A stretch of 22,289 nucleotides of DNA, taken from NCBI RefSeq assembly GCF_006345805.1, contig NW_021836995.1, positions 1 to 22,289 on the forward strand, read 5' to 3'. Of the stretch, positions 3,011 through 22,054 are shown piece by piece. Position numbers and translations under genes: made by a program. The stretch's first letter is position 1; each line of letters begins with the position of its first letter. The notes under the pieces are model-generated. The model was not told the DNA's origin. It worked only from the letters and a program-made list of their open reading frames with translations, and did not search any database. Origin of the DNA: Octopus sinensis (Eukaryota).

Positions 3011-3253
3011 TAGTAGTAGTATTAGTAGTAGTAGTAATAATAATAATAATAATAATAATATTAATAATAATAATAATAATATATAAAAATAATAAAATAA
3101 TAATAATAATAATAATAATAATATAATATCATAATAATAATCATAATAATCATAATAATAATAATAATAATCATAATAATGATAATAATAGTAATAATAA
3201 TAATAATAATAAAAATAAAAATAATAATAATAATCATATTAATCATAATAATC

Positions 3254-3284
<31 letters not shown>

Positions 3285-3395
3285 TATAATAATAATAATA
3301 ATCATAATAATCATAATAATCATAATAATAATGAATGATAATAATAATAATATAATCCAATAATAATAATAATAATATAATATAATAATAAAAAT

Positions 3396-3449
<54 letters not shown>

Positions 3450-3450
3450 C

Positions 3451-3487
<37 letters not shown>

Positions 3488-3537
3488 TAATAATAATAAT
3501 AATGAAAATAATAATAATCATAATAATCATAATAATC

Positions 3538-3569
<32 letters not shown>

Positions 3570-3746
3570 CACAATAATAATAATAATTATATAATAATAA
3601 TAAAAATAATAATAATATAATAATAATAAAATAATAATAATAATAATAATAATAATCATAATAATAAAAATAAAAATAATAATAATAATAATGAAAATTA
3701 ATAATAATAATAATCATAATAATCATAATAATAATAATAATCATAA

Positions 3747-3777
<31 letters not shown>

Positions 3778-3801
3778 ACTATAATAATAATAAAAAATAA
3801 A

Positions 3802-3857
<56 letters not shown>

Positions 3858-4017
3858 ATGATAAAAATAATAATAATACATACTAATAATAATAATAATA
3901 ATAATAATATAATAATAATAATAATAATCATAATAATCAGATAATAATAATCATAATAATAATAATAATAATAATAATAGTAATAATAATAATAATATTA
4001 ATAATAATAATAATAAT

Positions 4018-4064
<47 letters not shown>

Positions 4065-4138
4065 TAATAATCATAATAATCATAATAATCATAATAATAA
4101 TAATAATAATAATAACAATAATAATAATCATAATAATC

Positions 4139-4169
<31 letters not shown>

Positions 4170-4342
4170 TAATAATAAAAATAATAATAATGATAATAAT
4201 AATAATAATCATTAATAATAATAATGATAATAATAATAATACTAATAATACTAATAATAAATAATAATAGCAATCATAATAATAATAATAATAATAATCA
4301 TAATAATCATAAAATAATAATAATCATAATCATAATAATGAA

Positions 4343-4379
<37 letters not shown>

Positions 4380-4612
4380 TATTAGATACTATAATAAATA
4401 ATAATAAATAATAATAATAATAATAAATAATAATAATAATATAAAAATATAATATAATAAATAATAAATAATAATAATAATAAGAATAATAATGATAATA
4501 ATAATTTAATAATATAATATATAAAATAATAATATAATAATAATAATAATGATATAATTTTAATAATAATAATAATAAAAATAAAAATAATAACAAAAAA
4601 TAATAATAAATA
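3011..4612 (+). repeat. Long degenerate (AAT)n microsatellite with CAT/AAA/GAT variants, preceded by a short (TAG)n
   Basis: Read directly from the sequence. It accounts for all poly-I/poly-Y ORFs at 3061-4596. Confidence 0.98.
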
Positions 4613-4910
4613 AGAAGAAGAAGAGAATAAGAAGAAGATAGAATAAGGAAGAAGAAGAAGAAGAAGAAGAAGAAGAAGAAGAAGAAGAAGGAGATCAGAA
4701 GAGAAGAAGAAGAAGAAGAAGAAGGAGAAGTAGAAGAGAAGAAGGAGAAGAAGAAAGAAGAACCAAGAAGAGAAGAGAAGAAGAAGAGATAAGAAGGAGA
4801 AGGAAGAAGAAGAAAGAAGAAGAAGTAAGAAGAGAAGAAGAAGAAGAAGAAGACAAAGAAGAAGAAGAGAAGAGAAGAAGAAGAAGAAGAAGAGAAGAAG
4901 AAGAAGAAGA
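4613..4910 (+). repeat. Degenerate (GAA)n purine tract
   Basis: Read directly from the sequence. It accounts for the poly-S/L ORF at 4695-5000. Confidence 0.97.
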
Positions 4911-5197
4911 ATTATAATAGCTCCGGGCTGAATAACAACATGGATGTTCCCTGGGAGCCTCTCTCCAAAAAAACGAATTTAATTCCAAGAAAGGTTCCAC
5001 AAAATATCTTTTCCAAATGTCTTTTAAGGCAAAGTAACTAAAAAGTCCGAACTATTATTGCCATATATAGTATGGTTTTCTTTCTTTTATGCATAATATT
5101 TCCATGTGACATGCATAAGAAATAGAAGCGAACATCAGAGCTCTTGAAAGACAGTAAGTACATAAATTGATTAATTAATTAATTAATAAATAAGTAT

Positions 5198-5293
5198 ACA
5201 TGCAACTGTTTATGCATACACGTACACATTTTAATTATAAAGTGTACATGCAACTGTTTGTGCATACATGTACCCATTTTTAATTATAAAGCA
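5198..5293. repeat. Two-copy ~48-bp tandem duplication
   Basis: TACATGCAACTGTTTATGCATACACGTACACATTTTAATTATAAAG is followed by TACATGCAACTGTTTGTGCATACATGTACCCATTTTTAATTATAAAG. Confidence 0.85.
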
Positions 5294-5589
5294 TAAATAA
5301 TGCTTACACGCGCTCACACGTACACACAGAAAAAAAACCACGTTACGCGGACGAAAACAAAACAAAAACAAAGCGATTTTTTCACGAACAAACGCAAAAA
5401 AGAGCAAATTGGTCACTGAATTTAGAAAGTCACTGAACAGTTATGCCCGGAAACATGACTACCAAAAAAATAGAGGCGAATTTCGATCTGTAAGTCTTAT
5501 GCGAGTTCGATATGAACAATATATTAATTCGGAGAGAATTCAGAAGCGGTGTTTTGTCAAAAAATTGACCATGTACAAACAGTCCCTTC

Positions 5590-8500
5590 TTCTAACGTCA
5601 CCGTCACAGAGGCGGCGGCTTGTCAAAAGTTGACTCTGAAAAAATGGACCCCTCTGATGTCGCCGTCAATCATTTAATGAAAACAAGCCAAAATCATGCG
5701 GATCGGTCATCGCCCGGGACAACAAGGACCGCGTTACCCAGTAGGGAACCAGACTGGGGTCGAAAAGTTGCTGCTGGAACAAACTCTCAAAAAGAACGAT
5801 CTACCATGTGACCAGAACCAGAATACTTCTAACTCTGGACTTGTAGTTGACAACCAAAAAACACCACCTAAAGCAAACGTATAAAATGGACCAAGAGAGG
5901 ACTATGAGATGTGTTGAAAGCTTTTTATACAGCCCAACTAAACCCAAACAATAACCTCAGTGTACAAACATACATCTCATGGAGAAATTCCGTAGGCAAT
6001 GACGTACGTAGATATATAGACGCAAATAAATTAAGTAATGTACGCAGAGATTAATTAAAAACAAAAGACCTAATTGACGCTGAAATTGACAAAATTAGGA
6101 CATAATAGCTCATGGTAGACAAAAGAAAACAGCAACAATGTACACGAAATTGGTAACAGTAGCACAGAAGCCAGTGTACAAGCGGCAAATCAACTTCCCA
6201 AGGGGAAGTTTAAACAAAGAATAGCGAAGACGAGAGATTTGAAAAAAGAGGAGAACTTAGACCTTCCTCAAGAAAACAAAATAGATATGACATAGATGAT
6301 GCGGGAATAATAGAGAAAAGATTATGGAAGCAAAAGTGGACATTATGAGAGAACTCGGCAAGATTGAGCTCACTGACATGGTTAATAGAGAACCACTACC
6401 AAAGTTTTCAAATGGCACAAGAAATAACAACACAATCATGACATATAACGTTGCCCTAGGACAGATCTTAAGAATAAGGGGAATGATTTGACAACCTTAA
6501 ATAATCTCATTTATTCCACTGCTAAAGAGTAACTACCCACAAGGTATTAAGATGACAAAGAAAAAAGACCAGGCATGTCAATGAACCTCCTAAGTGAAAA
6601 GTTAGCGATACAAAAAGAGATTGAATCTCTGCGGGCGGATGTTTCAGTTCTCGATGAGCTTGCTAGAGGAGTGAATATTAAGCCGAGAAAAGCTAGAAAA
6701 ATCAAGCAAAAATATAAAGCTAAGATCTCATAAACCTCCCTGCAACTAAGGACTGTTGAAACAACGGATACCGTTGAAAGCTCAACGGCTTAGAAGGTAT
6801 GACAAAAGAAACCAATTTTATCGACAAAATAAATTTGTTAAGACAGATGCAAAGAAATTTTATAGGGAAATTGGCAAAAATAAAATACACATAGAAGATC
6901 CACCTAAGCTTGAGGAAGTGGAGGAGTTCTGGAAGAAGGTATGGAGCAACGAAAAAGAGTTTATTATGCTGAGGCTGACTGGATAGAACGTGAGAAAGAG
7001 AGACTGGATGAACTTAAAGACAGAAATGGGAAGCAATAGGAATAGAGGAGCTAAGGTGTGTCCTTAGGAGGCTCATAAATGGAAAACCCCAGGACTGATC
7101 GGTCCCTAACTCCTGGCTGAATGTTTGACAGAGGTACACGAACATCTCGCTGCATCTCTGTCTGATGTCATTCAGAACCCCAGAGCAACTACCTGCTTGG
7201 CTGACTGAAGGAACCACCTACCTATTACCTAAAACCGAAGAGACAAAAAAACCAAAGAATTACCGGCCAATAACATGTCTCAACACCACCTACAAAATCC
7301 TCACATCCATAATAACGGAGAGAATGTACGCTTTCCTTGAACAAAATTCTATCCTTCCACAAGCTCAAAAAGGTTTGTAAAAGAAACTCTTATGGGTGCA
7401 AAGACCATTGCTCATAAACAGAATGATTGTAGAGAATTGCCGGAGCAAACAAAAACCTGAGTATGGCATGGATAGACCAAGGAAAGCGTATGACAGTGTC
7501 CCACATAAATGGATACTCAAGGCCCTGAGATATACAAGATCTCTCCTGTCGTCTCAAAATTCTTAGAGAATAGCATGACCATGTGGAACACACGTCTCTT
7601 TCTAAGCCATAGTAATGGGATGAGCCAGTCCAACAGCATCAACATCAAACGAGGCATCTTTCAAGGTGACTCCCTCTCTCCATTACTTTTTTGCATGGCA
7701 CTGTCCCACTCTCAAACGAATTGATAGTACCAGATATGGGTACAAAGTTTTTAGTAAGTTAATAAACCACCTTTTCTATATGGACGACCTAAAGCTGTTT
7801 GCCAGGGAATGACCGAGAGCTAGAAGGGCTGCTAACAAATGTTAAAGAGTTTAGCAATGATATCGGAATGGATTTTGGGGCCTTGATAAGTGTGCTAAAG
7901 CAACTTTTGTAAGAGGCAAGCTCAGGCAAACAGCTTCTGTTAAATAGATATTGACACTACATCAAGGGAACTTGACCCACAGGAAGTTACAAATACCTAG
8001 GAATCAACGAGGAGATGGTATCCATCATGCTACTATGAGGAAAAATAAGAAAGGATACTATAGGAGAATAAGGCTTGTACTGAAGACTGAACTCAACTCC
8101 AAAAATTGCATTGAGGCCATTAACACCCTGGCACTTCCAGTAGTCCAGTACAGTTTTTACATCATTAACTGGAACCTTACGGAACTCAACGCTTGGACAG
8201 GAAGACAAGAAAGTTACTGACATCTAAGAGCATGCACCACCCTAAGGCAGATGTAGACCGCTTGTACCTACATAGAAGCAGCGGGGGGAGAGGAATGATG
8301 CAATTAGAGCTGTGCTATAAGACCTCTACGTAGGAATGAACAGGTACCTATCTAGTACAAGGACTGGATGCTGCGACTTGTGTGCGAACACGAAAGTAGC
8401 AAAAGCTGCATTCTATTGTCAAGGAAGCTTATAAGTTCGAAGGGAACTAGACATTACCTTGAATCAGATGAAGAGCCGGAAACACTGCTACCCCCAGCCA

Positions 8501-9471
8501 AAGCAACAAGCGAATCAGCAGACTGCAAAAAAGAACGGCAGAATCAAATTGAGAGGCGGGGGAGTCAGAAGCCCCTGCATGGACCAATATATTCTCCGAA
8601 GCCAAATATTCTGCCATGTAGAACAACCCAATACATTAGTGGCTGAAGAGCTCTGGATTGAAAGCAGAGACTGAAGGCTTCATAATGGCAGCACAAGATC
8701 AAAGCTTGTTTACCAGAAATTACCAGGCTAAACGTTCTCCGAAACTGTACTGACCCTAAATGCAGATTCTGCGACACATTTGACGAAACGATAGACCATC
8801 TCGTTTCGGGATGTCCTGTGCTGACACCAAACGAATACAAAAATCGCCACGATAGGGTAGGACAGTATATCATTGGAAGATATGTAACCACTACAAATCC
8901 GACACTCCTGCTAAACTGGTATGAACACATCCTCAGCCAGTTGTTGAAGGTAAAGATGTCACCATCCTCTGGGATTTTCCAGTCAACACTGACAGAACGA
9001 TCAAGGCTAATCGACAGACATAATTGTTAAAGACAGGGAAAAAATACCTGCAGACTAATAGAAGTAAGCGTCCCCACTGATAAAAATGTATCTGTCAAGG
9101 AATTTGACAAACTTAGTAAATATAAGGACCTGGAAATCGAAATACAGAGGATGTGGAATCTTAAAACAAAAAACTGTTCCTGTTATTGTAGGTGCCCTAG
9201 GTATGATAAAAAGGATGTCAAGAAACACCTAGACATATCCCTGGAAAACCATGTCTCAAGGAAATCCAAAAGATTGTGCTAACAAGTACTGCCCCTCCTT
9301 AGAAAAACCCTATCAATGTAAATGTTTGGGTTGTATTACATGGAGATATTTCTCTACTTCCCCTCCCCAAGCTTTCAGCTATATTTCAACAACTCTTAAC
9401 CTTCACTTGCCCTAGGCGCTGGGTGTGCCCGGCATGTGATTGCATCTAACATGCATTTAAAAGTAAATGAC
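5590..9471 (+). mobile_element. Near-full-length R4/Dong-clade non-LTR retrotransposon (RT + CCHC + restriction-like endonuclease); 3' end abuts (AAT)n
   Basis: It has a single ORF architecture with a C-terminal RLE and no APE domain. The 3'UTR spans 9322-9471 and ends at AAGTAAATGAC|AATAATAAT. Dong-type R4-clade elements are known to target TAA repeats. The 5' boundary is uncertain (somewhere in 4920-5600). Confidence 0.93.
5696..9321 (+). pseudogene. Frameshifted R4/Dong polyprotein ORF (start uncertain)
   Basis: Joined frames give KNYRPITCLNTTYKILT (7255-7305), AWID..KAYDSVPH (~7465-7505), RGIFQGDSLSPLLFC (7650-7695), HLFYMDDLKLF (YMDD 7777-7788), FGLDKC, GGRGMMQLE, GLKAETEGFIMAAQDQ, CRFCx8Hx4C (8761-8814), RHD (8845-8853), R(P)DIIV (~9012-9028), LIEVSVP (9055-9075), KLSKYKDL, PVIVGALG, and LRKTLSM* (stop 9319-9321). 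It is interrupted by many +/-1 nt indels. Confidence 0.92.
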
Positions 9472-9491
9472 AATAATAATAATAATAATAA

Positions 9492-10041
9492 ATGCCCTGA
9501 TGCAGTACCTGGCAGTGGCTCTCATGGCTTCTGATCTACTGATGGAAGTGTTATCATGTACATTGTTTTGTCTTGGTATAAAAGATGAGCTACAGCACAT
9601 ATTCTGCTTAATACCACAGATTTGCTTGTCAGTTGTTTGTCCTTAACCAGTTGAGCATGTCCCTTAGTGGCTGACGATATGTGCATCTCTGATCACGAGC
9701 ATAATAGTGGGGGAGCATCATAGTCATGTGTGTGAGAGGGATTCTTTGGGGCTTGAATAATTCACCTCTGGAAACATGGTGGTTTCTTTCAACATCCTTA
9801 AACAACCCTTATTCAGGGACCTTTTGAGTGGGATGGGCTACTCAACCTGAAGAAAATTCTAACTGGGCCCCACCTGCAAGGTCATGTGCCGTTTATCTTG
9901 ATATGAGATCCCATGTCGCACACATATGGTTGTGATGCATGTGCCTGGTGTACCCTATCAGACGGGTAGTCATGATGGGTAATTGGGCTTCGTATATTTT
10001 GCCCCAGTGTCACTTTGATGGCATGCACTGCTCTCTCACTC
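9492..10041 (+). mobile_element. Unclassified ~550-bp (AAT)n-embedded non-coding element, copy 1 (sense strand unproven)
   Basis: Starts at TAA|ATGCCCTGATGCAGTACC and ends at CTCTCTCACTC|AATAAT. It is homologous to copies 2 and 3, has no coding similarity, and shows no TIR or clear A/B box. Confidence 0.85.
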
Positions 10042-10061
10042 AATAATAATATATAATAATA

Positions 10062-10107
<46 letters not shown>

Positions 10108-10114
10108 TAAAATA
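10042..10114 (+). repeat. (AAT)n spacer between units 1 and 2
   Basis: Read directly from the sequence. Confidence 0.95.
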
Positions 10115-10669
10115 ATGCCCGGATGCAGTACCAGGCATGGCTCTCATGCTTCTGATCTTAACTGATTGGAAGTGTTATCATGTACATTGTTTTGTCTGAA
10201 TAAAAGATGGGCTACAGCAAATATTCTGCTCAATACCACAGATTGCTTGTCAGTTGTTTGACCTTAACCAGTTGAGCATGTCCCTTAGTGGCTGACGATA
10301 TGTGCATCTCTGATCACGAGCAGCATAAGTAGTGGGGGAGCATCATAGCCATGGTGTTGAGAAGGATTCTTTGGGGTTTGAATAATTCACCTCTGGAAAC
10401 ATGGGTGTTTCGTTCAACGTCCTTAAACAACCCTTATTCAGGGACCGTTTGAGCGGAATGGGTTACTCGATCTGAAGAAAATTCTAACTGGGCTCCACCT
10501 GCAAGGTCATGTGCTGTGTTTTATCTTGATATGAGATCACCATGTCGCGCACATATGGTTGTGATGCGTCCTGTGTACCCTTATCAGACGGGTAGTCATG
10601 ATGGGTATACTGGGCTTCGTATATTTTACCCCAGTGTCACTTTGATGGCATGCTCTGCTCGCTCACTTC
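10115..10669 (+). mobile_element. Unclassified ~550-bp (AAT)n-embedded element, copy 2
   Basis: Starts ATGCCCGGATGCAGTACC and ends CTCGCTCACTTC|AAAATAAT. It is colinear with copy 1 along its full length, with scattered substitutions and small indels. Confidence 0.85.
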
Positions 10670-10671
10670 AA

Positions 10672-10754
<83 letters not shown>

Positions 10755-10776
10755 AATAATAATAATAATATAATAA
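10670..10776 (+). repeat. (AAT)n spacer between units 2 and 3
   Basis: Read directly from the sequence. Confidence 0.95.
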
Positions 10777-11223
10777 ATGCCCTGATGCAGTACCAGGCAG
10801 AGGCTCTCAATGGCTTCTGATCTTAACTGATTGGAAGTGTTATCATGTACATTGTTTTGTCTTGGTATAAAAGATGGGCTACAGCAAATATTCTGCTCAA
10901 TACCACAGATTTGCTTGTCAGTTGTTTGACCTTAACCAGTTGAGCATGTCCCTTAGTGGCTGACGATATGTGCATCTCTGATCACGAGCATAAGTAGTGG
11001 GGGAGCATCATAGTCATGTGTTGAAAGGGATTCTTCGGGGCTTGAATAATTCACCTCTGGAAACATGGGTATTTCGTTCAACATCCTTAAACAACTCTTT
11101 TTCAGAGACCATTTGAGTGGAGAAGCTACTCCACCTGACGAAAATTTTAACTGGGCCCCACTTGCAAGGCCATGCCCTGTCTATATATGAGATCCCCATG
11201 TGGCACGTATATGGTTGTGATGC

Positions 11224-11225
<2 letters not shown>
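10777..11225 (+). mobile_element. Unclassified (AAT)n-embedded element, copy 3, lacking the last ~100 bp
   Basis: Starts ATGCCCTGATGCAGTACC. Homology stops at GGTTGTGATGCAT (11225), where (TA)n and a SINE begin. Confidence 0.85.
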
Positions 11226-11257
<32 letters not shown>

Positions 11258-11259
<2 letters not shown>

Positions 11260-11649
11260 TGCAGGAGTGGCTGTGTGGTAACTAGCTTGCCTACCAATGG
11301 CATGGTTCCGGTTCAGTCTTTCTTCATGGCACCTTGGGCAAGTGTCTTCTACTATAGCCACGGGCCGACCAAAGCCTTGTGAGTTGAGTTGGTAGACGGA
11401 AAGCAACCCGTTGTATATATATATGTGTGTATGCGTGTGTCTATTTGTACTTGTGTGTGTAGTGTGTTTGACCCTTCTCCACCGTCGCTTACAAACCGAT
11501 GTTGCTGTCTTTATGTCCCAATAAGCTAGCGGTACGGCAGAAGACAAAGATAGAATAAGTAGCAAGTTTACAAACTCTATTTATTCAACGAAATGCGGTG
11601 CTCCAGCGTGGCCGCTGTCACATGACTAAAACAAATAAAAGAATAAAAG
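11258..11649 (+). mobile_element. Full-length tRNA-derived CORE-type SINE (octopus OR-like): head, internal TA/TG microsatellite, tail
   Basis: It has an A-box-like TGGCTGTGTGGT, a B-box-like GGTTCAGTC and a CORE-like CCTTGGGCAAGT. The tail GCTTACAAACCGATG...GGTGCTCCAGCGTGGCCGC...ATGACTAAAACAAATAAAAGAATAAAAG is homologous to 14665-14858. A (TA)n run lies at the 5' end. Confidence 0.85.
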
Positions 11650-11780
11650 CGAGAATAAAAGAATACATACATACATACATATATAAAATTAAATTAGAGA
11701 TAAAACCACTATTAGGCAACTCAAACAGTGATATACTCCCTAATATTATTATAAGATATATATATATATATATATATATA

Positions 11781-11940
11781 GGCGTGGAGGTGTGGTAAGT
11801 AGCTTGCTTCACAACCACATACTCCTCGGGCTCAGTCCCACAGAGTGGCATCTTGGGCAACTTTCTTCTACTACAAACACGGGCCGACCAAATCCTTGTG
11901 AATGGATTTGGTAGCCAGAAGCTGAAAGAGGCCCGTCGAA
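11781..11940 (+). mobile_element. Same SINE family, head module only, flanked by (TA)n on both sides
   Basis: GGCGTGGAGGTGTGGTAAGTAGCTTGC...TCTTGGGCAAC...GGGCCGACCAAATCCTTGTGAATGGATTTGGTAG...GCCCGTCG is colinear with 11258-11415. Confidence 0.85.
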
Positions 11941-11996
11941 TATGTGTATGTATATACGTGTATATATATATATATATACGTGTATATATATATAAC

Positions 11997-12070
<74 letters not shown>

Positions 12071-12075
12071 GTATG
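11941..12075. repeat. (TA)n/(TATG)n microsatellite
   Basis: Read directly from the sequence. Confidence 0.95.
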
Positions 12076-12119
12076 TAATATGTTTATATATCAAAATAAT
12101 CAGCAAGGATAATTTGTGT

Positions 12120-12620
12120 ATCTCTATAAATTCATACTTAGGTTATACACTATACTGGTATTCACTGTTTATAAAAAAATACTCCTTAGATTAAAATTTT
12201 ATTAATATATAATTAGTATGGTCCTTTACCATAATACTCCTTTATTAATACCAGAATATACCAATTAATCAATATTCCCAGATACCATCTGATGAGTTAG
12301 CATTTAAGTATACAATATGTATAAATATTAAACTATTTCTGGATAAATTCTTTTCCTCTATTGTGATAAAAGTTTGGTATATACTCAAAAGTATTCATAA
12401 ATTTCTATCCTTTTGTTATAATATTCTTCTTAATAATCCTCTGAATAACTCTAAACTTTAACTGTATACATTATAGCAACATTGTTTAAAATATTGTACT
12501 ACATGATAAGACTTCCCCTGTTTCATTATCAATGGTCTGCTAGTGGGAGACCCCCTTGATTATCAGCTAACAACTTGTTTTAAGTTTTTCCTTTCTAAAC
12601 CTCATGATTTTACTTATAAT
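12120..12620 (-). mobile_element. Possible highly decayed L1/Tx1-type ORF2 C-terminal remnant
   Basis: One minus frame (with stops) reads CIQLKFRVIQRIIKKNIITKG...LINWYILVLIKGVLW*R. This resembles the Q(F/Y)RIIHRI..N and L..K..IW..R segments flanking the L1-clade CCHC, but the knuckle itself is not recognisable. Confidence 0.35.
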
Positions 12621-12938
12621 AAATCTTGATTTTTTATGACTATACCAGCTATACACGCAGATATACGAGTGTATGTAAATACATATATGTATAAAGGAAT
12701 GAGACATATGCATGACAGTCGCCCTTATGCACCGGATAGTCTTACACTCATATGCATACCTACACACGTACACTTATACATAAAACGAAAATGTTACTAT
12801 CGATCAATTTTATTAAGGGTAAGCACTACCTATCTTGCCTACCCAGGCGGCATGCCCCTGATACACATGCATACATATATATGCGTATTCATATATATAT
12901 TTACTCTACATATATATTATATATATATTATAGTACGC

Positions 12939-13064
12939 ATATATAATTATAATAATTTTAATGACAGAGAAAAATCTAAATGATATGTATGTATATATAT
13001 ATATATATTTATTATATACATATTTAGACTTTTCTCTGTTATTGAAACTATTATAATTATATAT
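12939..13064. repeat. Imperfect 43-bp inverted repeat around a TA-rich spacer (small MITE-like hairpin)
   Basis: Arm 12939-12981 and the reverse complement of 13022-13064 are identical at 39 of 43 positions. Confidence 0.8.
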
Positions 13065-14040
13065 ATGTAAAGTCATATATATATATATATATTATATATA
13101 TAGACATATATGCAAGCATCTATGTATATAAACATATATAATGGTGTGTGTGTACGTACATACATACATACATACATACATCAACATGTAATACAACATA
13201 TTAATGTGTAGATTCGATTTGTGTGTAGAGGCTGTAAGCGTTTAATTAATTAGAGATGGGCGTGGTAGAGAGGCAAGTGTCTCGACATGTATCACGCGTG
13301 AAATCCATAACGAAAGCAATTAAACATGATAGAGTAATATCCTTGCATTTATTGTCTCGTTCGGGAAGTAGAAGGCCAATATTACAGACCGATCGCGTTT
13401 CTCGTTAAGTTTTTATTAAAGGGGATACGGAGACAGCAGTAGTGGTAAGGAGAGACAGAGCGAAGAGATGTAAGGAAGATGTGAGGTAGGTGTATGAGAC
13501 ACAGCAAGAGAAGGAAAGAAATGAAGACGGAAAGTAGGAAAGAAGGTAGAAAGGAGAGAGAAAAATAAACATAGAAGAAATTATTTGTAATTTTGTTGTT
13601 CACAAATTGTTAATAACGTTTCATTGCATTTTTCCTCGGGAATCGTACAATCTTATTTGCTTGTAAATTTTTGAAATGTATGTATGTGTGTGTGCGTATG
13701 TGTGCGTATGTGTGTGTTTGTATGTGTGTTTCTATGTACATATGAATATGCGTATCTATCTATAAGTGTTTATGATTAAATGTGTGTATTTGTCACTATG
13801 TAGACATATATACACATATTTATGTGTGAATATATGTATGTGTCTATGTGTGTGTGTGCGTATATATATGTGTGCACGCGTGTATTTATGTGTGTATATA
13901 AGTGTACTTGTGTGCGCGCGTGTGTGTGTATCATGTAGTTATATATATGTATATCTATGAATACAAGTGCACATTCATACTCACACTCGCAGACACACAA
14001 ATATTTACATGCATACTTATAAACACACACATCCTCACAT

Positions 14041-14139
14041 ACGACAGGCTTCTTTCAGTTTCCGTCTACCAAATCCACTCACAAAGCTTTGGTCAGCCCG
14101 ATGCTATAACAGTAAGCACCTGGAACCATGTGGTTGAGG
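14041..14139 (-). mobile_element. SINE head fragment, internally deleted
   Basis: CGACAGGCTTCTTTCAGTTTCCGTCTACCAAATCCACTCACAAAGCTTTGGTC...GGAACCATGTGGTTG is the reverse complement of the SINE head. Confidence 0.8.
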
Positions 14140-14858: not shown

Positions 14859-15230
14859 CAAATCGCTCTGTGATAAAATTATTTAGACGAAGTGGTAACG
14901 TTTTTTCTCTCACAGTATTCTTAAATATGTCGCTGTGTTGGCTAAGTCTAAATATGAAGGCGTTTGTCTTTCCTGAATATGTCTAGTTATAATAGATTTA
15001 TGTTAAGCAGGAAATTATGAGTTCCCGTCTCGATACACTCCTCATGTATGAAGATTTTCTTTTCATGTCAGCTAAATTATAGATAGTACGATAAAATTGC
15101 AAATTTCTGTTGAGTATTTAAATTCCCTATCATTGATCAAGAATCTAACGATAGAACATTGCAATGAGACCGAACACTAAATTATATATTTACACACACT
15201 CACACACACACACACATACACACACATATA

Positions 15231-15277
15231 TGACAGGCTTCTTTCAGTTTCCGTTTACCAAATCCACTCAGAAGGCA
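15231..15277 (-). mobile_element. Short SINE head fragment (3' part of the head)
   Basis: GACAGGCTTCTTTCAGTTTCCGTTTACCAAATCCACTCAGAAGGC matches 14041-14090 and 15821-15870. Confidence 0.8.
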
Positions 15278-15680
15278 TATACCATGACAGTTTGCTTTTC
15301 TTAGCCTGACGAGCGCTGGAACCTGGACTAGTAGGTGAATACGCCAAGGAACGAGAAATATATTGGATATATTTGGGGTACTTAGATCTGCTCAGGACTT
15401 AGTGCTTGCTTTTTCCATGAGTATGAGTAAGTATTTCATTTATGTCTTACGTATTTATCGCTGAGGAGGGAAAAATTCTTATGAATTAACCCCGAAATTG
15501 GGACCAATACGGTAATAACGGATTTTTTAGAAATTTCTATCGGCTTGTTCCGAGACGCATAAATTATAATGGTTATTGACAATTTTGTCTTTTTTCGGCA
15601 TATTTGGCACTAGAATTTTTCTTTTTTCGTAAGTTATTTTTTATTTTGTAAGTTATTTATAAATTAACATTTAAAGGTAT
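15278..15680 (+). mobile_element. Probable Penelope-like/retrozyme-type terminal repeat remnant carrying a broken type-I hammerhead
   Basis: CTTAGC-CTGACGA-GCG...CGC/GCCAAG at 15300-15348 (see findings). The 3' extent is a guess. Confidence 0.35.
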
Positions 15681-15750
15681 TTTTTTATATGCTGGCCATT
15701 GATAAAATTTTTGTTTCGAAAAAAAATTTATCCACATCATACTTAGGTGT

Positions 15751-15804
<54 letters not shown>

Positions 15805-15820
15805 TATATTATATATATAT

Positions 15821-15980
15821 ACGACGGGCTTCTTTCAGTTTCCGTCTACCAAATCCACTCACAAGGCTTTGGTCGGCTGAGCTATAGTAGAAGACACTTG
15901 CCCAAGGTGCCACGCAGTGGGACTGAACCCGGAACTGTGTGGTGGCAAGCAAGCTACTTACCACACAGCCACTCCACGCC
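15821..15980 (-). mobile_element. SINE head module, well conserved, ending in (TA)n
   Basis: The reverse complement reads GGCGTGGAGTGGCTGTGTGGTAAGTAGCTTGC...GGGTTCAGTCCCACTGCGTGGCACCTTGGGCAAGTGTCTTCTACTATAGC...GAAAGAAGCCCGTCGT, with A box, B box and CORE-like block. Confidence 0.9.
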
Positions 15981-17346
15981 TATAATTGTAGGTAATTAAT
16001 TATGAAATATTTGGAGATATTAGCCTACCTATTCCAAAGTAACAACACAGTCTACACAGAAATTACAACAATCTTCACTGCTCCCACTTAAATGTGGATA
16101 ACTATGAGCACAGACTTTACTGCGGTTGTTGCAGTGAGAGAAACTTTCACATTGGTTTTTTGGTGCAAAATACATTCTTATTTATAGCACTAGCAGGCAG
16201 ATAAATCCGCTACCTAGAGGCAAGACAATCAGAGCACGGAATTTCCAATCTCTTTGGGCTTGTCAATAATGGACACTCGACCGCTAGAGATAACAGCAAT
16301 TCAACTACCCGCCAGAGATATATAGATTGATAGAGCCAGAATAGGCACCGGTTTGCGATTATACACACATTATAGATAAATATAGATAGATAGATAGATA
16401 GATAGTTTGGAAGATAGATAGATATCCATGTATCCATATATCTGCATATGTATTTATATGCATGTTCTCATGAATGTGGCTGGAAAAATACAAGAGAAAC
16501 AGGACATCTATAGACCATAAGATAATGAGTTTGCAAATCCAGCAACAAAGATACATTTTCAGCTTTAAAGCTATTATGATTGGAGAAACAAGGATACGTA
16601 CCAAACTCTCTCGAGCAAAGCAGGGCAGAAGTTAGGAACTTGGGGACAGAATGCAAATCTATAATTTATATGCTACAATTCATATTTGGAAATATAAAAA
16701 TCTGCAAGACCTTCTTAAAATTTGAAGGATGATGGTTAAAAGAAAGTCATTTCCTTCACAAGGTATACATACATACATATATGCATGCATGCATAAATAC
16801 AAACATACATACACATGCGTGTATGTGAGTATTTATGTAAGTGTACATATATGTAGGAATGTGTTTACATCTTGAATGCCTCTCGCATCGAAAGGAGTCC
16901 TTGAAAACAGGGTAATTATGTGTGTGTGTGTGTGTGTGTGTGTGTGAGCGGAGACATGTGTTTTGATAGGGGAATAAATAGTTTGATAAATAGATCTCAA
17001 CATGTAGAACCATTACTTTCCGACACGATTTCTTTGTCTCACCGACACAATTTCTTTCTCGTACTCTCCATTTATTTTTTTGTCACATTCCCTTTTGTCG
17101 AAGAGCGTAGGATTGAAACGTCAAAAACTTTTCCCTTTTTCCCCCGAGCGTCAAACTAAAACGCATGCTTGTTGTTTCCTCACCTGTCTCTCTCTTTTGT
17201 GTGTATGTGAACTACACATACACACACAGCGACACACACACACGCGCACACACACGTGTGTGTGTATATATATATGTATGTATATATGCATACATACATA
17301 TATACATAGATCCATACATACATTTTTGACGTTTCAAGCCTACGCT

Positions 17347-17877
17347 TGTGTGTGTGTGTGTGTGTGTGTGTGTTAGAAATCTACGGATACACTAATGCGC
17401 AAAACGGAGAAATTGAAACAACCCCGAGTGGGGGAACAGTTCTTCAAAAAACCCTCGATTGTTTTCCTCCAAAAGTTCCTATGTGCTCGGAATCTATATA
17501 GTCCGAGGTATATTTGTAGAGAATTTCATTAAAAAATATCCATTTTCTTGAAAGTTAAGACGAATGAAGTGGACTCCGGTAAATTTTCAGAAGTTCCCCA
17601 TCCAACGCCCTCCTAAAACACTTTCTCCACAAAATTTTGTATAATCAAAATCTACATGATTTTCTACACGTAGAAATTTTCATTAAAAAATGCCCATTTT
17701 TCTGTGAGTTATCTTCATCCAAAATCGGGGAGAAAGAAATTTGTTGTTACGCCAGATAATCATTTACTCCTTTCATCTCACTTTCTCCTACAATCGAAGG
17801 TTTTTTTGAAGAACTGTTCCCCCACTCGGGGTTGTTTCAATTTCTCCGTTTTGCGCATTAGTGTATCCGTAGATTTC

Positions 17878-17910
<33 letters not shown>
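17347..17910. repeat. Foldback/MITE-like structure: perfect 79-bp inverted arms (17373-17451 / 17802-17880) extended by (TG)13 and (CA)15
   Basis: The arms match 79/79 when compared base by base, with imperfect extension to 17461/17791. The spacer is ~330 bp. Confidence 0.92.
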
Positions 17911-18219: not shown

Positions 18220-19060
18220 TAGAAATCTGATACGGACGACTTCTTCCGAAACACCCCCAAGTGGGGAACAGTTCTCAAAAATAACCTCTAATTGTTTTCT
18301 CCCAAAGTTCCTATGTCCTCAGAAACTACATATTCTGATGTATATTTGTAGAGTATTTCATTAAATAATATCCATTATGGACACCGGGGAATTTTCCGAA
18401 ATTCCCCACGCCATCCTCTCCTGAAACACTTCCCATAAAAATTTTGCATATCTGGAATCTACATGATATAATGCATATTCGTTAAAAAAATTATTAAAAA
18501 ACTAGCAGTATCGCCCGGCGTTGCTCGGGTTTGTAAGGGAAATAACTATATAAGCATTTTTAGAGAGTTACTTCCCTTATAGATGCCAATTCGGGCTTTC
18601 TTAGCCATTTCTGTTTTGGTGTCTTCAAGCCATGAAGTCGTTGTTCTAAAAGAATGCTGGTCTCCTTGACAACGACGTTGATTTCTTTACACTCCCTTCC
18701 CCACAGCTTCACGAGGAGGGAAGAAGAAGGGGGAGAAGCAAACAGGTGCAGGTGTGACCATTGACGCCAACTCCGCCGCCATCGACACACGAAAAATATG
18801 CATAAAATGGAATAAAAAATGATGTTAAATTATTTTTAAAATCGTAGATCAGCGTAGACGCGCGCTAATACTCAGACGGGCTCGATATGAATCACGACTA
18901 TAAGATACCCGAATTGTTTAAACTGCACCGCAAAATGTGGGAGTAGTTAGGAATCTAATTCGAAGGGGACAGACACTCACACAACTACAGTTTTATATAT
19001 ATAGATATCCATTTTCTGAAAGTATATCGTCCAAATTGAATGTGGGTGGGTAGTTATGCC
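18220..19060 (+). repeat. Diverged paralog of the 17373-17760 repeat, split by a Helitron at 18501/19006
   Basis: It shares the blocks TAGAAATCT..GATAC, GAAACA.CCCC.AGTGGGG.AACAGTTCT, CAAAGTTCCTATGT, TATATTTGTAGAG.ATTTCATTAAA and AATCTACATGAT. Homology resumes at 19006 (TATCCATTTTCTGAAAGT). Confidence 0.8.
18502..19005 (-). mobile_element. Non-autonomous Helitron (504 bp)
   Basis: The minus strand starts with TC(TATATATATAAAA) at 19005 and ends with CTAG at 18502. A GC hairpin at 18513-18530 lies 11 nt from the 3' end. It is inserted between A and T with no TSD, and the empty site matches the paralog at 17531-17556. Confidence 0.88.
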
Positions 19061-21153: not shown

Positions 21154-22054
21154 CTTATATATATATATATGATATATACATATATAATTAAAAATCTATA
21201 TATGGTCATAGATGCATGTGTGTATGTATGTATTGATTTATCTATCTAACAGCACACACACACATACACACACACACACATACACACACACACACATACA
21301 CACACAAGCAAAACGTTTGGCATCACTCGATAAAGAAACTTAATTTATATAGATAATATAAATATAGAATGTCTTATAGTAACTTCTAGAATAGCCACGC
21401 ATATGTATCATGACACTAAGTAAGTATTCCATAAGCTGAGTATTTTATCATCAGTTCTACTCAACAGTCATGCACTTTCTATTCAAAATTGAAACTGGTA
21501 ATTCCCAGTATTCCTTGCCGTGGATTATCATCGACAATTCTCATTTAAAACCGCTAATGGACCTGAACTATAACTGTATTATTTATTCAATCATGGAACT
21601 ATGCAACGCAAACCTATCTTACTCTCATCCTTCCCTCATTTTTGACAAACTGGAATATACCCATATCATCGGCCGGGGACATTCCGTCATTTTCACAGTT
21701 TTATGACTTCTCTATCTCTGATGATGGTATACTCCACTTATGGAATCCTTACTCAATATCATGAACCACACGTTTGACTATTCTAGAAATAGCTGTAAGA
21801 GATTCTATATGTTTATATTCTCCATATAAATTAAATATCTTTTTCGACCGCTGCCAAACGTTTTGCTTTTCCATTTTTACTTTCATCTATATCTACCCAG
21901 TCATGAAGAAACCACTTCCATCCACCTCTGACAGGCAGTCTTAACATTACACTTTCATTTGCAGCTCAAGCAGGAATTGTAGTGGTGACCCAAGCTGAGT
22001 ACTCATAGTTCATACCTATTACATTATGTCAGTTACCGAAAACTCCATATATAT

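Follow-up and report, generated by a model that had tools for sequence, protein, structure and literature searches.

Elements that live in microsatellites

Retrotransposons of the Dong type target TAA repeats, a mollusc being among their hosts (PMC3812793), and in Octopus vulgaris the Dong-R4 long interspersed nuclear elements (LINEs) are abundant and recently active, with five families and 1129 near-intact insertions (PMC13282606). Here we describe a ~550-bp non-coding unit from Octopus sinensis (NCBI RefSeq assembly GCF_006345805.1, contig NW_021836995.1, positions 1 to 22,289 of the forward strand; this whole 22,289-nt stretch is the window referred to below), where three head-to-tail copies, each with an (AAT)n block before it, fill the region 9472-11225 directly behind a dead Dong-like LINE. 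We consider the unit to be a real, unclassified non-coding repeat in an AAT tract, most likely a small non-autonomous retroelement.

The closest described systems depend on which strand of the unit is taken as sense. On the plus strand, the closest functional precedent would be the R2 SIDEs, which are short internally deleted elements of R2, a LINE of the restriction-like endonuclease (RLE) type, and which keep the parental 3' end and a 5' ribozyme resembling that of hepatitis delta virus (HDV) (PMC3414825). Like the R2 SIDEs, the unit read in this way is short, non-coding and located in the specific target of an RLE LINE, in the same orientation and junction phase. Unlike them, it matches no ribozyme and has no end homology to the adjacent old LINE copy, which is the only parent candidate compared.

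On the minus strand, the closest precedents would be short interspersed nuclear elements (SINEs) and LINE 3' fragments that end in a microsatellite and give rise to families with common microsatellite flanks, for example the RTE-derived elements in Lepidoptera (PMC2887409). The unit read in this way resembles them in having a short body with a simple-repeat tail, a conserved tail-proximal part and a 5' truncation, and differs in that it lacks an RNA polymerase III (pol III) head, has no matching LINE 3' end in the window, carries an (ATT)n tail and is tandem rather than dispersed. Satellites that are derived from transposable elements by unequal exchange are likewise tandem, with ~10% divergence and an array that ends mid-unit, but the array described here has only three copies, a long variable microsatellite in each monomer and a strongly non-uniform divergence.

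Layout of the array

Based on alignment and BLAST, copy 1 occupies positions 9492-10041 (550 bp, full length), copy 2 positions 10115-10669 (555 bp, full length) and copy 3 positions 10777-11225 (449 bp, without the last ~100 bp of the plus strand). The (AAT)n block before copy 1 (9472-9491, 20 bp) is the tail of the LINE and is shared with the unit. The blocks before copies 2 and 3 are imperfect repeats of 73 bp (10042-10114) and 107 bp (10670-10776), called by the tandem-repeat scan at 10042-10116 and 10672-10776. An earlier note, made from the sequence alone, had placed three copies and AAT blocks of these lengths here, and BLAST, alignment and the tandem-repeat scan all agree with it. The same note had described the junctions as conserved (we mark junctions with a slash). 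On the left side this holds for copies 1 and 3, which read TAA/ATGCCC, but copy 2 is off by one base (ATA/ATGCCC). On the right side, copy 1 reads CACTC/AATAAT and copy 2 reads CACTTC/AAAATAAT, where the repeat begins with AAAAT. The 3' junction of the LINE itself, ATGAC/AATAAT, is as the note described.

Copy 3 ends at consensus position ~449, directly against a (TA)16 tract (11226-11257, seen in the sequence and in the tandem-repeat scan) that ends the array. Next to this tract is a plus-strand SINE copy with a (TA/TG)n tail (11258-11424, delimited by a five-copy alignment and self-BLAST), the first in a cluster of SINEs that forms the right-hand limit of the array. The ~100 bp missing from copy 3 are nowhere in the window by BLAST, and there is no AAT tract on the right side of this copy.

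Pairwise identities by BLAST are 90.8% (copies 1 and 2), 90.5% (copies 1 and 3) and 88.5% (copies 2 and 3), with E-values from 1e-138 to 1e-178. The copies are not one fresh tandem duplication, as the note had already judged. When each unit was searched against the 22-kb window, only the three copies gave significant matches, and the LINE and the rest of the window were unlike the unit.

Properties of the unit

The unit is a non-coding sequence with defined ends and without a recognisable head. The longest open reading frame (ORF) within any copy is 59 aa, the six-frame translation of the consensus has no match in Pfam, and a search of the consensus translations against 5.8 billion proteins also found no match. 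ARAGORN finds no tRNA in the unit. Rfam gives no match at E<=1 on either strand of 9000-12200, which includes the HDV-like, hammerhead and other ribozyme families, and none at the gathering score across the whole window. By eye, there is no plausible P1 pairing at the 5' end of the unit. There is no terminal inverted repeat, the nearest pairs being internal matches of 10-23 nt. The absence of an ORF, terminal inverted repeats, a tRNA-like head and homology to the adjacent LINE, which the earlier note had reported, is thus borne out by the ORF scan, ARAGORN, Rfam, Pfam and BLAST.

We cannot place the unit among classical SINEs, miniature inverted-repeat transposable elements (MITEs), retrozymes or truncated Dong copies, because a defining feature of each was looked for and is absent. 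A classical SINE has a pol III-derived head (tRNA, 5S or 7SL, with A and B boxes), a MITE or DNA transposon has terminal inverted repeats, and a metazoan retrozyme has a hammerhead in each monomer (Rfam, E<=1), and the unit has none of these. Runs of four T occur on both strands of the unit, and on the sense strand such runs would terminate pol III. The units are also not ordinary 5'-truncated Dong copies, because they are uniform in length and non-coding, in contrast to the ragged coding pieces found in Dong arrays. In a tblastn comparison of the units with 120 Dong-like proteins, the best E-value was 0.02, versus 5e-36 for the last 550 bp of the LINE itself, which served as the control.

Separate insertions or local amplification

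The explanation that we prefer, with roughly an even chance of being correct, is that we are dealing with a short non-autonomous retroelement of ~550 bp, non-coding and of the kind without long terminal repeats (non-LTR), with an AAT/ATT trinucleotide tail. The AAT tract would have begun as the tail of the old, dead Dong-like LINE, and the unit would have been copied into this tract three times by target-primed reverse transcription, in which the repeat tail of the RNA would anneal to the nicked microsatellite strand and prime cDNA synthesis. Every insertion would regenerate the repeat tract, which could then be hit again, and the outcome would be a head-to-tail array punctuated by microsatellites. 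Dispersal of the unit as a family and its movement by reverse transcription are both inferences.

A rather unlikely alternative, which still deserves attention, is local amplification, in which a ~550-bp sequence of any origin lay between two AAT tracts and unequal crossing-over or replication slippage duplicated the unit together with its AAT block twice, leaving a three-copy macrosatellite with a period of ~625-665 bp that has since diverged by ~10%. Flanking AAT tracts are ready direct repeats, and exchange between them would reproduce both junctions and the variable spacers just as they are seen. The earlier note had concluded from the conserved junctions that the insertions were separate, but unequal exchange between the flanking tracts copies the junctions too, and this argument falls. 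Local amplification also accounts for three adjacent copies of one family in a single orientation, for their near-equal pairwise distances, and for the lack of a further copy within the 22 kb or in the collections searched. A tree of three sequences without an outgroup is uninformative here.

What local amplification explains less well is how the substitutions are distributed. The right 233 ungapped columns contain 41 sites that vary among the units, and the left 205 contain 8 (Fisher p about 3e-6); the substitution density is 4.5-fold higher in the right half of the unit than in the left 240 bp. CpG is involved in 13 of the 49 variable sites and accounts for only part of this uneven spread. 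Neutral decay predicts an even spread, while copies that left a family at various times would show an uneven one if selection acted on half of the element. The uneven conservation therefore favours a mobile, selected family over a neutral local duplicate, and local amplification would need additional gene conversion to produce the 4.5-fold difference between the halves. It also leaves the truncated copy 3 unexplained, and related LINE arrays elsewhere were clearly built by separate insertions, with differing lengths and families.

Indels, unlike substitutions, show no deficit in the conserved half, and a good number of them are in short homopolymers, so some may reflect assembly error or long-read indel error. 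Within the initial ~110 bp of the unit (9492-9600 in copy 1 and the corresponding stretch of copies 2 and 3), substitutions are almost absent, but the alignment has nine columns with gaps, most of them losses of 1-2 nt from short homopolymers or dinucleotides.

Several observations weigh against a mobile retroelement. A similar unevenness could arise by partial gene conversion between the tandem copies, and three adjacent copies of one family at roughly equal distances are also expected from unequal exchange. Exact 33-, 27- and 26-mers from the invariant parts of the unit have no match in metagenome, viral and prokaryote-genome collections; only one locus is known, whereas a mobile family is by definition dispersed. 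BLAST finds no match between the unit and either of the two LINE 3' ends in the window, or anything else there. In addition to the absence of a pol III head and of a known ribozyme, neither strand has a significant fold in comparison with shuffled sequences. A literal search of the full texts of papers for strings from the unit and from the SINE in the window also gave no match. On balance we favour a mobile family over local amplification, although not strongly.

The neighbouring Dong-like LINE

The decayed ORF of the LINE is at 5699-9318 on the plus strand, where it was recognised by an RVT_1 match and by tblastn colinearity with relatives, which are reverse transcriptases of 1221-1223 aa that it follows from about aa 9 to the C-terminus. 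Both a CCHC motif (C-x2-C-x7-H-x4-C) and an RPD...E..K motif can be read in the C-terminal part of the translation, and for an intact relative (P0003) the nearest solved structures are R2 proteins. The Dong-like proteins closest to it in the database belong to other organisms and share only ~40% identity. The 3' untranslated region (UTR), counted from after the last residue aligned to the relatives, is at 9319-9471 on the plus strand (about 154 bp) and ends in ...AAATGAC; the UTRs of three relatives (L001-L003, described below) are ~70-145 bp. Judged from these sequence features, a real RLE-type, TAA-associated, Dong-like LINE next to the array is supported. The earlier note had called it Dong-like and TAA-targeted, and the RVT_1 match, the colinearity and the fact that the relatives sit in (TAA)n with matching orientation and phase point the same way.

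This LINE copy has been dead for a long time. It has 22 in-frame stops in its last 766 codons, and when stop codons were simulated on an intact relative, 22 stops required at least 15-20% substitution. The private substitutions of each unit amount to 2.7-4.4%. The LINE copy is therefore several times older than the units, or at any rate than their most recent common ancestor, and had long been dead when they inserted or were copied for the last time. Because the LINE is so much older, we attribute the adjacency to a common AAT tract rather than to any working partnership with this particular copy. For the same reason we rejected the idea that the unit is an extension of the 3' UTR of the LINE: a 154-bp UTR is normal for the clade, and the ancestor of the units is several times younger than the LINE.

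We also rejected a common 5' motif. A full-length LINE at one related locus (L001) starts with ATGTCCTGG and the unit with ATGCCCTGA, but the likeness ends after 8 nt and is put down to chance, and the LINEs of L002-L004 begin differently.

A second copy of the same LINE family is present on the minus strand at 1-1302, where it is cut by the start of the window. It corresponds to the reverse complement of 5815-7161 with 76% identity, and in the self-BLAST the similarity stops at 1302/5815. Upstream of the LINE, 3035-4911 consists of a 1.5-kb imperfect (TAA)n tract with frequent CAT and AATCAT variants and, immediately after it, 300 bp of (AAG)n. Between the (AAG)n tract and the start of LINE homology at 5699 there are about 800 bp of unassigned sequence, and the current 5' flank of the LINE is not TAA. 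A tandem repeat of a 48-bp unit (2.1 copies, 87% identity) is found within this unassigned stretch at 5183-5295.

Arrays built by related LINEs

For comparison, we used five loci from other organisms (L001-L005) that encode relatives of the LINE. In four of the five, a (TAA)n tract is clear around the element in the same orientation; L003 has only a short A/T-rich stretch. Read on the sense strand, the four loci have X/AATAAT after the 3' end of the element X, with minor variants in L001 and L004, and ...AATAA/X before the 5' end wherever the 5' junction is visible. The order in L001 is LINE, (TAA)n, 5'-truncated LINE, (TAA)n, full-length LINE. In L005, an array at 7344-13900 contains eight TAA-separated pieces in one orientation, and those with detectable coding similarity belong to several diverged families with 38-60% identity to P0003. 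The 3' terminal sequence differs for each L005 piece. These sequences lend support to array-building by repeated insertion into (TAA)n in this LINE clade.

The architecture of these arrays of TAA-specific Dong/R4-type LINEs (L001, L002, L004 and L005) is the same as that of the unit array, with an element, a variable AAT tract and another element in one orientation, and with X/AATAAT on the right and ...AATAA/X on the left. The members differ. The short ones in the comparison loci are 5'-truncated LINEs of varied length, each with its own 3' UTR and with C-terminal coding sequence still in place, whereas the units are uniform in length, non-coding and unrelated to any Dong-like protein.

In L004, from an unrelated organism, there is a ~420-bp AT-rich non-coding piece at 3991-4409, between an A-rich/TAA stretch just past the stop codon of the Dong-like LINE and a 51-bp (TAA)n tract. 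Two readings fit this piece, a long 3' UTR or one more non-coding sequence lodged in a TAA array. Its end, CTCACTTC/ATAAT, has some likeness to the end of the unit, CTCACT(T)C/AAT, but this is terminal only, with nothing further behind it, and we rejected it as a link.

Sense strand and the enzyme that would move the unit

If the plus strand is sense, the driver would be a TAA-specific Dong-R4 enzyme. If the minus strand is sense, the unit would have an (ATT)n tail, copy 3 would be a 5'-truncated insertion, and the driver would be another LINE with a microsatellite tail. We regard the two strands as nearly equally probable, leaning very slightly towards minus. Any partnership with Dong requires the plus strand, because all Dong-like elements that we examined carry (AAT)n after the 3' end of the sense strand.

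In favour of the plus strand, the reading ...AATAA/unit/AATAAT matches six Dong-like junctions and agrees with the LINE in the window in orientation and phase, and Dong-R4 enzymes are present in octopus. The minus strand is favoured by copy 3, which is then an ordinary 5' truncation, while the plus strand reading needs a later deletion. It is also favoured by the position of the conserved half, which adjoins the left AAT block and on the minus strand is the tail-proximal 3' region, the part that a LINE enzyme recognises; the plus strand reading makes the 3' region the least conserved part. Partners of RLE LINEs such as the R2 SIDEs depend on the 3' region (PMC3414825). The earlier note had used the plus orientation as a pointer to a Dong partner, but the clues within the window, namely the end of copy 3 and the pattern of conservation, do not favour that strand, and a link to the Dong-like LINE is possible at most.

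Base composition is equivocal, as the minus strand of the unit is A-rich and the 3' UTR of the LINE is T-rich on its sense strand. RNA structure decides for neither strand. Compared with shuffled sequences, the folds of whole units have z of -1.1 on the plus strand and +1.2 on the minus strand, and those of the terminal 110 nt range from -2.0 to +1.6, with the last 110 nt of the plus strand folding slightly better than shuffled (z -1.2 and -2.0).

A fragment of a different LINE is found at 1303-2990 on the plus strand, with a tail of (ATC/ATT)n followed by (AGT)n and then by a long (TAA)n tract. Its reverse transcriptase motifs are readable by eye and it has an open stretch of 234 aa at 1589-2293, for which no record was found. 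The fragment has no Pfam match and only two homologues, in contigs of 580-722 bp with 57-67% identity. LINEs with ATT-type tails therefore exist in this genome, a further point for the minus strand.

With the plus strand as sense, the unit could be a derivative of another Dong-R4 family, which we consider unlikely. Such a derivative could be internally deleted and SIDE-like, with the 5' and 3' ends of a Dong family that is absent from the window, or it could be a long 3' UTR whose 5' truncations always end at an internal TAA through microhomology with the target. The orientation and repeat phase fit every Dong-like junction examined, octopus contains several active Dong-R4 families side by side (PMC13282606), and the R2 SIDEs offer a precedent (PMC3414825). 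Since 3' ends are wholly different among the families within one array, the missing homology to the old LINE says little against a derivative, and the slightly better folding of the last 110 nt of the plus strand is in line with it. However, the unit has 550 bp without a trace of C-terminal coding sequence, which is long next to the ~70-145-bp 3' UTRs of L001-L003, its 5' end has no ribozyme-like element in Rfam, its 3' region on this strand is the least conserved, and copy 3 has neither the 3' end nor the tail.

The mobilisation of Alu by L1 is a case of poly(A)-dependent parasitism, and mobilisation through a (UAA)n tail would be its microsatellite-tail counterpart. This would be the case if the unit were a SINE-like RNA unrelated to any LINE, with the plus strand as sense, mobilised in trans by a TAA-specific Dong-R4 enzyme, so that a (UAA)n 3' tail annealing to the nicked TAA target would suffice without common ends. 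We think this improbable, more so than descent from a Dong-R4 family. The fit to Dong-like junctions in orientation and phase, and the lack of homology to the adjacent LINE by BLAST, are as expected, and the very diverse 3' ends of co-resident Dong-like families are compatible with recognition of the tail alone. Against this, the plus-strand 3' end is missing from copy 3 and the 3' region is the least conserved, Rfam and ARAGORN detect no promoter-like head, the runs of four T on the plus strand would stop pol III, and dispersed copies were not seen in the collections searched. RLE LINEs, which need to bind the 3' UTR (PMC3414825), offer no precedent either.

Other repeats in the window

The tRNA-type SINE that bounds the array is also placed between (TA)n tracts, and microsatellite-punctuated retroelement arrays are therefore normal in this window. 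It is ~175 bp long, starts with GGTGCAGGAGTGGCTGTGTGGTAA and ends with ...GAAAGAAGCCCGTCGTATAT and a (TA/TG)n tail, and it forms microsatellite-punctuated arrays of its own at 11226-12100, 13990-14130, 15180-15300 and 15740-16000. On the plus strand it has two copies, each with (TA)n on either side; the minus strand carries one full copy, and there are also two 3' fragments. ARAGORN makes no tRNA call on this SINE.

Farther to the right, 17347-17455 and 17798-17906 form a near-perfect inverted repeat, with 109-nt arms that are 99% complementary and 342 nt apart. It begins in (TG)n, ends in (AC)n and is perhaps a foldback element or one that resembles a MITE. Related to it is a direct repeat (17415-17544 and 18248-18376) with 86% identity, and another inverted repeat of ~150 nt (21306-21454 and 21718-21868) has 79% identity.

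Significance

If the three copies are only a local triplication, they are a matter of ordinary repeat annotation, and in either case the unit is a point of genome annotation with no bearing on a gene or phenotype. If a (UAA)n tail alone does suffice for a SINE-like RNA unrelated to any LINE, this would be tail-only mobilisation in an RLE-type, site-specific clade where 3' UTR recognition was thought to be obligatory. A dispersed family inserting into AAT/TAA repeats, should the unit prove to be one, would be among the few non-autonomous elements tied to a microsatellite-specific LINE. It could then show whether such LINEs recognise their template by the 3' UTR or by the repeat tail alone, and it would help to explain the growth and fragmentation of long trinucleotide tracts in the repeat-rich octopus genome.

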